Under the pieces are notes generated by a model, which ran no database searches, was not told where the DNA came from, and saw only the letters and a program-made list of their open reading frames with translations. Source: Octopus sinensis (Eukaryota). Taken from it: a stretch of 64,000 nucleotides of DNA. Positions 16,592 through 60,742 of the stretch are shown here, in pieces (position 1 is the stretch's first letter; each line of letters starts with the position of its first letter). The stretch is taken from positions 10,354,001 through 10,418,000 of the forward strand of contig NC_043011.1 in NCBI RefSeq assembly GCF_006345805.1, given 5' to 3'. The position numbers and the translations under genes were made by a program.

Positions 16592-16892
16592 CCAAAAGAG
16601 ACAACGAGAAGTAAGGCGACTTACTCATGTGTTCTTTTTCGAACTGCCTGAGGTGACCTTGGTCTTTTTTGTAGGTTTTTCTTTCCAAGACTACACCTAA
16701 ACTGTGAACCTTATATATATATATATATTGCTTTTTTATATACACACACAACCCACAGATCCCTATTGATCAAACTTTTTTTTTTTTTTTTTCTTCTTGC
16801 CCCACCCATCCCACCACGAAAAGAAAAAATTCTACATTGTATTTCGTCCATTTTTATTCTGTGTTTAGCCCTGTGTGGCTACAATAAAAAGT

Positions 16893-17440
16893 TATCTATC
16901 TATCTATCTATCTATCTATCTATCTATCTATCTATCTATCTATATCTATCTATATCTATCTATATCTATATATCTATCTATCTATCTATCTATCTATCTA
17001 TCTATCTATCTATCTATCTATCTATCTATCTATCTATCTATATCTATCTATCTATCTATCTATCTATCTATCTATCTATATCTATCTATCTATCTATCTA
17101 TCTATCTATATCTATCTATATCTATCTATATCTATCTGTCTATCTGTCTATCTATCTATCTATCTATCTATCTATCTATCTATCTATCTATCTATCTATA
17201 TCTATCTATCTATCTATCTATCTATCTATCTATCTATCTATCTATCTATCTATATTTATCTATATCTATCTATATCTATCTGTCTATCTATCTATCTATC
17301 TATCTATCTATCTATCTATCTATCTATCTATCTATCTATCTATCTATCTATCTATCAATCTATCTATCTATCTATCTATCATCTATTTATCTATCTATCT
17401 ATCTATATCTATCTATTTATCTATCTATCTATCTATCTAT
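16893..17440. repeat. long (TATC)n array between the two Tx1 copies
   Basis: Direct reading, about 550 bp. Confidence 0.95.
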
Positions 17441-17445
17441 GAATC

Positions 17446-56105: not shown

Positions 56106-58600
56106 TATATATATATATATATATATATATATATATATATATATATATATATAATTGAGAAAATGGAGAGATTTAATAGATATAAATTAAAGTATTTATT
56201 AATTAACATTGCTTACAGTTGTTTCAATTTACATCCAATACAAATCACAAACATATAGAATAAAATAAGTTCGCATTCTGAAGATTTTGAGCAAAATCTC
56301 ATCAAGGCGAAGGGACATTCAGGAAGTTACATGTTGATCGGTTGGGATGCTCCAACAGACTAACGAGACGAAAGTGTGTTTAGTTATTGTGTGTGTGTGT
56401 TGTGTGTGTGTGTGTGTGTGTGTGTGTGTGTGTGTGTTAATGATTTTGTTTAAATGGGATAATAAAACAAAATATATAAAAAATATTAAAACATAAAAAT
56501 AAGTAAAAGCAAATAAATGAATATTAATAAAAATAAAAATAAAGCCGTTATAAATATGGACGTTTATTGTTTATGTTAATTTGTGTGTGTGTGTGTGTGT
56601 GTGTGTGTGTGTGTGTGTGCGTGAGCGCATGGATGTTTATTATCGAAGTTGATTTATGTGTATATGTGTATATGTATGCATGTTAGTAAAAAGTTAATAA
56701 AATCAGTTTATTCAGAGATGTGTTTGTTTATTATTGTTTGAAAATAAGTCAATCTTTATAGTCATTTATTACAATTAATAGTCATATTTATGTATGTGTG
56801 TGTACATATATGTATAAATGAAAGGCACTGTGGATAATGTTAATATTAGACATCAATATATATATTATATGTAACGGTAAGATAAAATATATAAGTATAT
56901 TTAAATTTGCGTGTGTATAATAATTTGAAAATAAAAGTTAACCATTATAGTCTTGTACTAAATAAATAAATATATTTATATTCGTGTGCGTATATTTATT
57001 TGAGAATAGAAACTAATCTTTGTAGTCATTCATTTTTATTTCTATATTTATGTGTGAGTGAGTGCATGTATTTATATACACGCGTACGTTGAACGCATTT
57101 AAGTTTAGGACATTTAAAGATTAAGTGTTATCGATAGATTTACACTAATTTAATTTAAAGTATCATGTACTATATTAGCCGATTAATTAATAAAGATTAA
57201 TACTCAATATTATTATTAATTGAACTTTTTAGTATTATATTATTTATTATATATGTATTATTTATATTATTAATATTTTTTATTTGGTTTTTAAATCAAG
57301 TTACACTTACTATATTATGTTTATATCTTTAATATTCAATTTTATTTTTACTGATTATATTTTCTAAAAGCATATTTAGAGGAATGATTACAAGATGAAA
57401 TTGCCTTTTTTCTGGAATTAAGGAGTTTGTGTTTAGATGTTAGGATTTGAAATATTTCTTCGAGACACTGTTCACACACATGGAAGGTTCCGAGTTAGGT
57501 GAAGAATAAATAATAACTCTGATGAGTTATGATTAACTACAGCTGTTTCAGGCGTGTTTTTTTTTATGAACAAAAGTGCTACATCATGTAAAATCCGTTT
57601 ACATTAGGTGCATGCAAGTAAGAATTGATAAAAATAGCAGCCAAAGTACCCCTCTACCTGAATCACACGCCCATTGTACGTAACGTCCTAGATTATCCCT
57701 AAAAAGACGGCTTGCTGAAGGTTGGAATGTCTTTGAAGATGGGTTCGCTGTATCGTCGTTGATTTGTATCTAAATAACAACAAAATTATGGCAAATATCT
57801 ATATTAACACCTGCACGATTTTCACTACTAAAACAAAAAAAACTTGGATTTTTTGCATGGAATCAAGTACCCTGAACTCCTAATATGCTGCAGATCCCTT
57901 ATAATCCCGGGATCATTGGAATTTTTTATTTTTTCGTTGAATGAATTCCTGTGACCTCCTCATAAAAAAACAAAACCCTCTTTGGGTCCGAAAAATGGGG
58001 TAGAGTTAGGAGGAGGCCTCGGAAATTTCGCTCCCACCCACATTGATCTTTTCACCCTCACGAGGACCATAATTTTGTTATTATTTAGACTCCAATCAAC
58101 CCTGATACAGCAAACCTATCATCAAAGACATTCCAACCTTCTCCAAACCGTCTTTTTAGGGTTAATCAAGGACATTATGTACAATGGGCGTGTGATTTAG
58201 GTAGGGGGTACTTTGGCTGCTATTTTTAGCGTGTCGAGTGACCAGAGAGAGGCTGTTTCATTGGTTCGATTGCGTGATGACTTTTTTTTACACATATATG
58301 TATGTATATATATTATCGGCATATATGTATATATATCATTGGCACTTATCAAACACGAATTTGGCCATTGTCAAATATATATATATATATATATATATAT
58401 AATATATATATATATATATATATATATATATATATATATATATATATATGCATTTATACATACGTATATGTACATACTTACATCTATACGTATAAATATA
58501 TGCATATGTGGGCACAGGACGTCACGAAATGTGTACTACAAAAAAATACGAAGTACGAGTACATGAAATATGAACTATTTTCTCGAATAACGAAAGACAC

Positions 58601-58746
58601 ATATATGCGACGGGCTTCTTTCAGTTTCCATCTACCAAATCTTCTCAGGGTTTTGGTCGGCCCGATACTATAGTAGAAGACACTCACCCAAATTGCCATG
58701 CTGTGGGACTGAACCCGTAACAATGTGATTAGGAAGCAAGCTTCTT
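58601..58746 (-). mobile_element. SINE family B body (3' part of the SINE split by the ORF1-only element)
   Basis: Continues seamlessly from the head at 60743-60780 once the insert and one TSD copy are removed. Confidence 0.85.
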
Positions 58747-60742
58747 TATTTCATTAAATTTGCCACAAGGGCAGCACACAGAGAGAAGCTTGAGGGCTAG
58801 ACAGAGACATTAATGGGATGAATGATGATGATATAAGGATGATAAGGATGGGAGAAGACGAAAAGCGCCCGCCGACTTTCGCTTCTCTAAAAAATTGTTC
58901 TTTTTTTCTTTCTTTTTAAAAACACAATGACGCAATAAACCTCTCACACAGTTCAAAATTAAAAATAAAACACAAACACGAGGCAATAATCCTCTCACTT
59001 TTTACATTTTTAGTCTCTTTTTGAGGTAATACACCTCTTCAATTTTTCCGCCCGGCCAGGCTCCTCGCTTCATCGAAGCACCTGGTCCGTTCCGAACTTA
59101 AAGGTTTCAACATAAATCTGAAGGAGTCCTTCGGGAAGGAGTTCGTTATCTTCCATTGATCGTTCTCCCATAAGACCTCCGCAGCCACCTGCGAAGGCCA
59201 CTCAGGGTCCTCTGTGTAGGACAGAAGCCCCTCCCACCGGCACTTCCTTTCAATCTTTTTGATTTCATTTTGCAAGGTTCCTCCCTTGTGGAAGAGGACC
59301 AAAAATTCCTCCTCCAGCCAAAGGAGAATCGGGACACACCGGCAGCGTGTCACAACCTGCCGGCAATGTCCCGTTTTTCTTTTTTCTTTTCTTTTTCCCT
59401 TGGGCTGCGGGAGGGTGGTGTTCCCTTGCTGTGTCCAGTAGGTCCTCCTTTTCTCCCGCAGCTCTCGGATTCTTCGGTGGGCAACCATTGTTGCCCACCT
59501 TTCGCTTTCGTTTTTTCGAGGAGGTTTGCACCTCCTCGACATCCTCCTCCTTCTCTCCCTCCATTGAGGGAGCAGGGAGTGGTTCTTCTGTTAACTGCTC
59601 CAGGATCCTATTTTGGTCCTTGGGGCAGTTTTTCTCGATGTGGCCGGTCTTCAGGCACAGGTGACACTTGGGGGGGGGGCGTCCCTCGAGCATCACCGGA
59701 TACCTAGATCCGGCCATCCTCAAAAAATCTGGGAAAACCAGACTTTCGGCTGATTGGGTCCATAGGGTCAACACAGTATTTGACCCCTCCCAATCAGCCG
59801 CAGGTAAAATTTTTACGTTGAGCAGCTTGGTACTGCTACCACCCAGACCCCGCCGAATAGAGTCCTCTATCCACTCGGGTTCAACTCCAAGCTTTCAATA
59901 ATTTCTTTCCACAGTAGCTTGGAAGAAACATTATTTCCTTCCCCTCGAGGGGCCGGCTTGCAAAATCGCAAGCTTCTTTGGGGGAGTCAAATAGCAACCA
60001 GACCGTTGCAAATTTGACTCTCCGTGAAATAAATTTAATAGCTGGCATGTATTCTGCCAGCTCTTTCAAAATTGTGGCTTTCGGGAAGATGGTTATGGTA
60101 TCGAGCGACTTTGAATAAGTCTTCAACACCACCGTCTTCCTTTCGAGCTCTTTTAGCCATGATTTGGGAGGTGTTAATTCCCACACTAATATTTCCTTTG
60201 CCATTTTTTTTTTTAAATAAAAAGTTCAAATACAGTTCGTCAATACGTTTTCAAATAAAGAAAGATACACAAAAAAAGAAAGAAGACACAACAGAAGGGA
60301 AGAAAAAATAAAATTAACAGTTCAAATAAAGTTCTTTTTTTTTTAATAAATGATAGCTGTGAAAAGAGAGTTCAAATCCAGGCAAAGAAATAAATTTCCG
60401 GCCGAAAGGTACTCCTGGCCAATCCTTTAAATCCACGTGGGCACAAACATTTTCAAATACAATTTCTCACAATTATGTGAGACAACACACACGTCTCCAC
60501 CGCAAGGCAGACAAAAAGCCCCGAATCCAGTAAGGACTCCTTGCCTGTTCAAAAAAGTTAAAACCATCAGACAACCAATCCTACCGGACTCACAAAGCAA
60601 AAAGTCTTACCTTACAGTAGAGCGTCTTTCAGTTCAACTTTCGCCAGCTGCATACCAGCGTGACGACTTTTAACAGGTGCTGTTTTTGTTCTTTTTTCTT
60701 TTTAGGACGGAGCTCAGACCGAGGCTTCCTCTCAGTTCAAAC
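58747..60742 (-). mobile_element. complete ORF1-only (half-LINE/HAL1-like) Tx1-related retroelement, about 2.0 kb
   Basis: 15-bp TSD GGAAGCAAGCTTCTT at 58732-58746 and 60743-60757; about 540 bp of 5'UTR, ORF1, about 290 bp of 3'UTR with a Tx1-type tail, and no ORF2 trace. Confidence 0.85.
59039..60204 (-). pseudogene. ORF1 protein (zinc-knuckle), two frameshifts
   Basis: FATVWLLFDSPKEA...PSY, EWI...DWEGSNTV...FPDFL...VMLEGRPPPKCHLCLKTGHIEKNC aligns with copy 1 ORF1 FNTVVVRFPNQEVA...PYY, KWI...NWGGKTV...LPDKI...VMAEGKKPRCYKCGSPEHLIAKC. Confidence 0.85.

Follow-up and report, generated by a model that had tools for sequence, protein, structure and literature searches.

In a 64-kb stretch of the Octopus sinensis genome (NC_043011.1, positions 10,354,001 to 10,418,000; hereafter the window), which has a GC content of 39% and is rich in interspersed repeats, three long interspersed nuclear elements (LINEs A, B and C), both copies of a tandem short interspersed nuclear element (SINE) and an element encoding only the first open reading frame (ORF1) of a LINE terminate in the same 3′ sequence, a box of ~45-55 nt without poly(A). 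The 3′ end borne by the SINE and by the ORF1-only element is that of a poly(A)-less LINE lineage of the L1 superfamily, and this sharing is the signature of stringent, tail-dependent trans-mobilization. We consider it probable that these elements form a tail partnership of the stringent type, in which the product of the second LINE open reading frame (ORF2p) would recognize the box and copy the SINE and ORF1-only RNAs in trans.

The tail box and the elements ending in it

The box can be written as TTTGTCC-N-TCTGTGT, a short GC hairpin and AATAAAGAAAYA, with (TATC)n coming next in the LINE copies. Its best conserved part is AATAAAGAAA (AATAGAGAAA in Argonauta SINEs), and the conserved stretch reaches ~25 nt upstream of the AATAAA (TTTGTCC..TCTGTGT). 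Poly(A) is lacking from all six window copies, and these, like the copies from Argonauta, end in ...GAAAYN, beyond which comes the flank or a (TATC)n/(TTA)n repeat.

A first-pass annotation of the window had claimed that one terminal motif is shared by the three LINEs, the SINE and the ORF1-only element. All the strings it quoted lie at the coordinates it gave, and the sharing is borne out by an independent profile, by blastn and by shuffling. The 24-nt LINE motif TCTGTGTNNNGCCCTGTGTGGCTA occurs in three exact copies in the window, at 16858, 20459 and 34068, all on the + strand, and in none of 100 shuffles. Because the three LINEs are copies of one family, their agreement reflects ordinary descent and provides no independent evidence; the informative matches are those of the SINE and of the ORF1-only element to the LINEs, both restricted to the 3′ termini. 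When the SINE was compared with the window by blastn, its positions 191-232 matched the 3′ ends of LINE B (83%, E 2e-6) and LINE C (79%, E 1e-4), and these extreme LINE ends were the only matches outside SINE-related sequence. In local alignments of the last ~100 nt, the tails of LINE B and the SINE share 42 of 51 nt and those of LINE B and the ORF1-only element 31 of 38 nt, neither equalled in 500 shuffles; the scores of the weakest other tail pairs were reached by 1-11 of 500 shuffles, and every alignment falls at the 3′ termini. Circularity was avoided with an nhmmer profile trained only on 16 SINE tails of Argonauta hians, with no window sequence among them. Across the 64 kb, the best matches to this profile are exactly the six claimed sites (E 1.9e-8 to 4.5e-3), and the first match beyond them has an E value of only 0.57.

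The motif is not equally common on unrelated elements, as the box was not seen at the ends of four other SINE copies or families of the window (49179-49400, 22365-22600, 21424-21610 and the interrupted SINE at 58586-60785), which bear other tails. Nor was a copy of the tail motif found in an unrelated element at 37.7 kb that encodes a reverse transcriptase (RT). This second RT element (36600-40000; ORF 37767-38732 on the + strand, RVT_1 1.2e-31) is 25-32% identical to LINE A in its RT.

The box is also present in A. hians, where three full-length LINEs and one LINE fragment end in it. In a 20.8-kb locus of this species (L001), ~30 copies of the box terminate SINEs of at least two types that differ in their heads, one type being homologous to the body of the window SINE (64-69% identity) and the other a short element with a different head; a full-length related LINE at the same locus ends TCTATGTTTTTGCCCTTGTGGCTAATAAAAGAAATAA(TTA)4. 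Two further LINEs (L005) both end GCCC(T/A)TGTGGCTAATAAAGAAA and continue into (CTAT)n, with a junction, GAAACATATCTATC, identical to that of LINE B. Thus, the box and its association with (TATC)n-type repeats, found in both Octopus and Argonauta, are common to two octopod superfamilies. A more distant LINE (L003, ~35-54% amino acid identity) has a loosely similar end, TTTGTTCATCTTTCGT...AATAAATGTA|TATA, without a profile match, and the short contigs L002, L004, L007 and L008 end before the tail or bear a divergent one. A scan of JGI metagenomes with the 21-nt degenerate core CYKTGTGGSYAATARAGAAAY returned 13 matches, chance-like in character and all lacking the upstream half of the box.

The membership of the LINE family in the L1 superfamily is supported by the combination of an apurinic endonuclease-like (APE) domain, RVT_1 and zf-RVT, and by the RT, whose best relative of solved structure in the PDB is human L1 ORF2p (1.8e-26, versus 2e-16 for R2). 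LINEs A and B share 80.6% identity over 2654 nt, and LINE C, ~75% identical to both, belongs to the same family. The closest relatives of the window LINE proteins come from octopods, with A. hians at 55-63%. Within the superfamily, the elements are probably L1-Tx1, a label drawn from indirect features rather than from an RT phylogeny: an ORF1 of the CCHC type, described as characteristic of animal Tx1 elements (PMC5203782), the association with microsatellites, and the annotation of O. vulgaris, in which L1-Tx1 is the only L1-type group among the recently active LINE groups (PMC13282606). In the same annotation, 893 SINE families with recent activity are listed as 'unclassified', none of them being assigned a partner LINE. 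The zf-CCHC match of LINE A ORF1 scores 19.4 bits, under the 20.8 cut-off (E 1e-3). Names in the databases were of no help in assigning the Tx1 label, as two homologue searches and a cluster look-up returned proteins called just 'hypothetical' or 'reverse transcriptase'. We also considered an RNA recognition motif (RRM) fold for ORF1, for which Pfam gave no match; the AlphaFold model of an O. sinensis ORF1 homologue is of low confidence (pLDDT 53) and its weak RRM/ferredoxin-like Foldseek matches (E >= 0.011) are suggestive at most. Separately, a 466-aa protein (P0003/P0242; MCP3653585.1, WP_288064025.1) annotated in a Herbaspirillum metagenome-assembled genome is 63% identical to the C-terminal part of the ORF2 of this octopod LINE; encoded on a 1.8-kb contig, it most likely represents host (cephalopod) contamination in a bacterial bin.

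Table 1. Tail-bearing elements of the window, their parts and the adjoining repeats. TSD, target site duplication; UTR, untranslated region.
Feature	Position	Strand	Description
(TATC)n microsatellite	10851-11027	.	Directly upstream of the LINE A 5′ end
LINE A	11028-16892	+	Full length, dead: 5′ UTR, ORF1, ORF2, 3′ UTR
LINE A ORF1	11816-12964	+	CX2CX4HX4C knuckle
LINE A ORF2	~13145-16591	+	Split into at least six frames
LINE A APE endonuclease	13145-13555	+	Pfam Exo_endo_phos 6e-7
LINE A RT	14487-15230	+	Pfam RVT_1 3.5e-21
LINE A zf-RVT	15786-16310	+	Pfam 8.7e-7
LINE A 3′ tail box	16833-16892	+	Ends ...TTCTGTGTTTAGCCCTGTGTGGCTACAATAAAAAGT, without poly(A)
(TATC)n microsatellite	16893-17441	.	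Between LINE A and LINE B
LINE B	~17442-20493	+	5′-truncated, begins within ORF2, frameshifted; ends ...GGCTAATAAAGAAACA
(TATC)n microsatellite	20494-20653	.	Downstream of LINE B
LINE C	33571-34102	+	5′-truncated 530-bp fragment: last ~80 codons of ORF2 and 3′ UTR; ends ...GGCTAATAAACAAACT
SINE-dimer TSD, 3′ copy	41697-41712	-	16 bp, same GACCTTTTAAGCAGAA
SINE, second copy	41713-41898	-	5′-truncated, in tandem, 86% identical; own tail ending GGGCAATAAAGAAATAAGA
SINE, full copy	41899-42130	-	Head with box A/B-like motifs, body common to other SINEs, ~55-nt LINE-derived tail
SINE-dimer TSD, 5′ copy	42131-42146	-	16 bp GACCTTTTAAGCAGAA
Host SINE-X, 3′ part	58586-58731	-	tRNA-like head GGTTCAGTCCCAC; 5′ part at 60743-60785
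ORF1-only TSD, 3′ copy	58732-58746	-	15 bp, same AAGAAGCTTGCTTCC
ORF1-only element	58747-60742	-	1996 bp: 5′ UTR, ORF1, 3′ UTR ending ...CTCTCTGTGTGCTGCCCTTGTGGCAAATTTAATGAAATA
ORF1-only ORF1	60204-59884, ~59900-59265, 59410-59042	-	Three frames, CCHC knuckle
ORF1-only TSD, 5′ copy	60743-60757	-	15 bp AAGAAGCTTGCTTCC

The SINE dimer and the ORF1-only element

The SINE that the first-pass annotation had placed at 41713-42130 on the minus strand has the right span but is in fact a full copy followed by a 5′-truncated one, each with a tail and both enclosed by a single target site duplication (TSD). A paralogue of its flank (41515-42454) lies ~1 kb away at 43046-43599, is 69-81% identical, lacks the SINE and carries a single copy of the 16-bp target, representing an internal empty site. 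The TSD together with this empty site proves the insertion. The motifs resembling boxes A and B in the SINE head were recognized by eye, and a tRNA origin of the head received no support from ARAGORN or from Rfam, either at the gathering threshold or at E <= 1.

Positions 1-170 of the SINE are common to other SINEs of the window (83% over 169 nt with 49179-49347). The SINEs at 49179-49400, 22365-22600 and 21424-21610 have the same head and body and then continue into a different tail (...CCCCAAAATTTCGGGCCTTGTGCCT...), for which no LINE was present in our data. The occurrence of one head and body with two tails indicates that the tail is an exchangeable module among SINE families. As for their arrangement, three ~157-bp SINE copies of A. 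hians (L001 4900-5360) stand in a strict head-to-tail tandem, each with a terminal box, and the window SINE is likewise a tandem dimer within one TSD; such tandems suggest that a new copy inserts at a tail already present or arises by template jumping onto it.

The ORF1-only element is a genuine ORF1-only retrocopy: it is flanked by a 15-bp TSD, its frame-repaired ORF1 is homologous to that of LINE A (25% identity over 174 residues that include the knuckle, E 3e-9), and no similarity to ORF2 was found inside it. Matches to the ORF1 of the LINEs in L001, L005 and L003 gave E values of 7e-7, 3e-7 and 2e-5, respectively. Since its ORF1 is only 25% identical to that of LINE A, the element derives from a different LINE family. 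Its end at 58747 is real, although the last 'AA' of the end string given in the first-pass annotation (...GAAATAAA) belongs to the TSD. Part of the terminal 'AATAAA' is thus TSD sequence, and the tail of the element lacks a canonical AATAAA.

The sole database relative of the ORF1-only protein is O. sinensis LOC115225585, with 65% amino acid identity and 26% nucleotide divergence; this copy is 3′-truncated, with no ORF2 within 10 kb downstream. In the window (58586-60785, minus strand), the element is inserted in the tRNA-like head of SINE-X right after ...GGTAAGAAGCTTGCTTCC (...GGTAAGNAGCTTGCTTCC|), and directly before LOC115225585 (L006 9450-10985) lies the same SINE head, interrupted at the identical position. 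The shared junction would mean either that insertion is site-specific or that the element forms a composite with the SINE head and takes it along. That the tRNA-like sequence is itself part of the ORF1-only element was ruled out, as the rest of the host SINE resumes exactly after the TSD.

Three inverted-repeat pairs were also observed in the window, at 57629-57791/58228-58067, 44597-44689/45278-45190 and 55616-55736/56148-56031. Their arms of 90-160 bp are 82-88% identical and lie a few hundred bp apart, and they may represent miniature inverted-repeat transposable elements or terminal inverted-repeat structures.

Target sites, a possible tail hairpin and competing explanations

Between 10.8 and 20.7 kb, the window is occupied by one long (TATC)n microsatellite that is interrupted twice, by LINE A and by LINE B. 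LINE C is followed by TATATAG and no microsatellite. When the A. hians copies are included, TAT follows the LINE end in seven of seven cases, as part of (TATC)n in four, of (TTA)n in two and of TATATAG in one, and the 5′ flank is a (TATC)n or CTAT-like repeat in four of the seven and (TTA)3 in a fifth (the L001 fragment). Accordingly, LINE A, LINE B and the two L005 LINEs (L005 4548-18916) have (TATC)n or CTAT-type repeats on both sides, and in L001 (4745-4900, 11188-11206) (TTA)n adjoins the fragment on both sides and the full-length LINE on the 3′ side. Head-to-tail stacking of LINE copies is seen in Octopus as well as in Argonauta. The L005 LINEs are only 67-70% identical at the nucleotide level, yet occupy two copies of one flank (98.7% over 159 bp on the 3′ side; TTTTTCTTGTCTGTAAAACT common to both on the 5′ side), indicating that the same target was hit independently. 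That LINE copies of Octopus and Argonauta alike reside in (TATC)n or (TTA)n microsatellites is new here; for the seven copies, the repeat may be either a microsatellite target or the terminal repeat of the element itself. In most SINEs of Argonauta, the 3′ junction reads GAAATC|TAT(T/A)T, and the candidate TSDs, 10-11 bp long, start at the TAT of this junction.

How the partnership would operate can be outlined as follows. The LINE ORF2 protein would bind the box on the RNA, target-primed reverse transcription would begin at the end of the box, and any RNA that had acquired the box would be copied in trans. One passenger would be the SINE, with a head of RNA polymerase III (Pol III) type and its last ~55 nt derived from a LINE, and the other a 2-kb ORF1-only 'half-LINE', HAL1-like and originating from a related but different LINE family. 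From the sequences, we infer the recognition of the box by ORF2p, the LINE family that would drive each passenger and any role of a hairpin. Such a hairpin is plausible: the consensus can be drawn as a three-tier structure, UCU-N-UGUU-N-GGCC[CUUGU]GGCU-AAUA-R-AGA, with the AAUAAA-like core within the 3′ arm. In an O. sinensis LINE fragment (L006 560-640), the flanks of the box are kept and GAUU[GUAU]AAUC replaces GGCC[CUUGU]GGCU with the same three-tier fold; this inner stem is the only clear compensatory variant seen. The Argonauta SINE tail folds with z -2.4.

Several observations weigh against the partnership. The covarying stem-loop that the first-pass annotation suggested looking for was not found: in 24 tails, 80.2% of the cells pair versus 80.6% in shuffles, RNAalifold predicts no structure, and the single-sequence folding energy of the window tails has z ~0; as the 24 tails are decayed copies with little variation, the covariation test carries little weight in either direction. 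As for the invariant AAUAAA-like core, its function could lie in 3′-end processing instead of recognition by the RT. All window LINEs are frameshifted or truncated, so that no active driver is seen here, the ORF1 of the ORF1-only element is a mere 25% identical to that of LINE A, and a single SINE locus with this tail was found in the window and not one in a further O. sinensis sequence of 20.8 kb. Target signatures differ as well: the flanks of the SINE (GACC...) and of the ORF1-only element (AAGAAG...), whose TSDs measure 16 and 15 bp, respectively, lack the TAT/microsatellite signature of the LINE copies, which argues against one enzyme having moved all three classes here. The first-pass proposal that a single stringent lineage drives LINE, half-LINE and SINE therefore survives in part. 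The shared poly(A)-less 3′ end stands, at the level of families and across genera, but the single driver is not supported, given the divergence of the ORF1s, the dead LINEs and the differing targets.

Among the alternatives, the box might be a module for 3′-end formation or stability, centred on AAUAAA, with priming achieved by annealing of (CUAU)n/(UUA)n to microsatellites and the passenger tails being leftovers of their origin. The AAUAAA-containing segment is indeed the most conserved part of the box, the LINE copies of both genera adjoin (TATC)n/(TTA)n in constant phase, often on both sides, and the hairpin shows no covariation. However, genomic copies devoid of poly(A) imply that the starting point of reverse transcription is the end of the box or its immediate vicinity downstream rather than an A-tail, and a polymerase II poly(A) signal would be useless to Pol III transcripts of SINEs. 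Furthermore, the SINE and the ORF1-only element of the window have neither terminal microsatellite repeats nor microsatellite targets, the box is conserved well upstream of AATAAA, and the ORF1-only tail does without the canonical hexamer, so that we regard this explanation as distinctly unlikely. It is also very unlikely that the passenger tails are by-products of template switching, chimera formation or internal deletion of a LINE, that is, dead-on-arrival one-offs without standing parasitism. Although the window holds a single locus each of the SINE and the ORF1-only element, and the 3′ truncation of LOC115225585 leaves an ORF1-only family undemonstrated, a one-off origin of the SINE is excluded at the family level by dozens of Argonauta copies with at least two heads and a body homologous to that of the window SINE. 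As for the ORF1-only element, the enclosing TSD means that it was inserted as such, and its divergence from the O. sinensis relative implies at least two retrotransposed copies.

A chance likeness of AT-rich 3′ ends containing a poly(A) signal has a negligible probability. The AATAAA hexamer is common and the degenerate core does find 13 unrelated metagenome matches, but these lack the upstream box half, shuffles yielded neither the LINE motif (0/100) nor the similarity of LINE B to the SINE copies and the ORF1-only element (0/500), and the independent profile picks the six sites only. A far broader version of the stringent partnership can also be envisaged, in which an old Tx1-like octopod LINE superfamily, predating the split of Octopus and Argonauta, would be both microsatellite-targeted ((TATC)n or (TTA)n, cutting before TAT) and stringent, its box captured repeatedly by several SINE heads and by an ORF1-only element that would itself land at a fixed position in the tRNA-like head of another SINE, and would be a main engine of the octopod-specific SINE expansion, the families of which are still for the most part 'unclassified'; taken as a whole, this scenario seems rather unlikely.

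The octopod elements and known LINE/SINE systems

SINEs with borrowed LINE tails are well established (reviewed in PMC3747384). As in the tortoise CR1/Pol III SINE and eel UnaL2/UnaSINE1 pairs (Ohshima & Okada; Kajikawa & Okada 2002; reviewed in PMC3747384), the octopus SINE combines a head of small-RNA type with the last ~50 nt of a LINE and has no poly(A), a short repeat or A/U-rich stretch closes its tail, and the tail module is swapped among SINE families. Unlike the L2, CR1 and RTE partners of other SINEs, however, the octopus partner is an L1-superfamily element, the putative hairpin is short and shows no covariation in the sequences compared, and the system is known here from sequence alone. 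Closer in this respect are the stringent LINEs of the L1 clade described from monocots and Chlamydomonas (Ohshima 2012, PMC3472496), which, like the octopod LINEs and unlike mammalian L1, have a conserved 3′ end that also occurs on SINEs. Those elements come from plants and a green alga, with compensatory changes reported, whereas the present case concerns a cephalopod and features a CCHC-type ORF1 and microsatellite-associated insertion.

The association with microsatellites, in turn, recalls the Tx1 clade, members of which insert into (TC)n (Kibi), (TTC)n (Koshi) or (TTCC)n/(TTTC)n (crocodilian Tx1) (Kojima & Fujiwara 2004; Kojima 2015, PMC4494074). Like the octopod LINEs, these are APE-type, L1-related elements with microsatellite on both sides and tandem stacking; unlike Kibi, Koshi and crocodilian Tx1, however, the octopod LINEs adjoin (TATC)n or, in the case of one lineage from Argonauta, (TTA)n. 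A Tx1-type LINE that mobilizes SINEs is also on record, namely crocodilian Tx1-Mar with its SINEU passengers (PMC4494074). The link between SINEU and Tx1-Mar is a shared target, whereas that between the octopus SINE and LINE is a shared tail. The ORF1-only element resembles the mammalian 'half-L1' HAL1 (Bao & Jurka 2010, as cited in PMC4494074), being a TSD-flanked, non-autonomous LINE derivative with UTRs and ORF1 but no ORF2. HAL1 uses poly(A), as does its L1 parent, in contrast to the sequence-specific box that the octopus element would use. Also unlike HAL1, the octopus element is represented by one complete copy and one truncated relative, and its parent LINE family is absent from our data.

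Overall, the octopod elements are a new case of a known principle, as both stringent L1-clade pairs and Tx1-driven SINEs have been published (PMC3472496, PMC4494074). A search of the literature, with Repbase entries outside its scope, found no publication that pairs an octopod SINE with an L1-Tx1 LINE by a shared tail. More than one tenth of the octopus genomes consists of SINEs, which have undergone an expansion specific to octopuses; through the shared tail, an L1-Tx1-type LINE becomes a candidate driver of at least one octopod SINE superfamily, and the tail profile offers a simple search key with which octopod SINEs can be sorted by partner. More generally, the octopod LINEs would provide an animal example of a stringent L1-superfamily element, which bears on the view that the poly(A)-only mammalian L1 represents a derived, relaxed state (PMC3472496).

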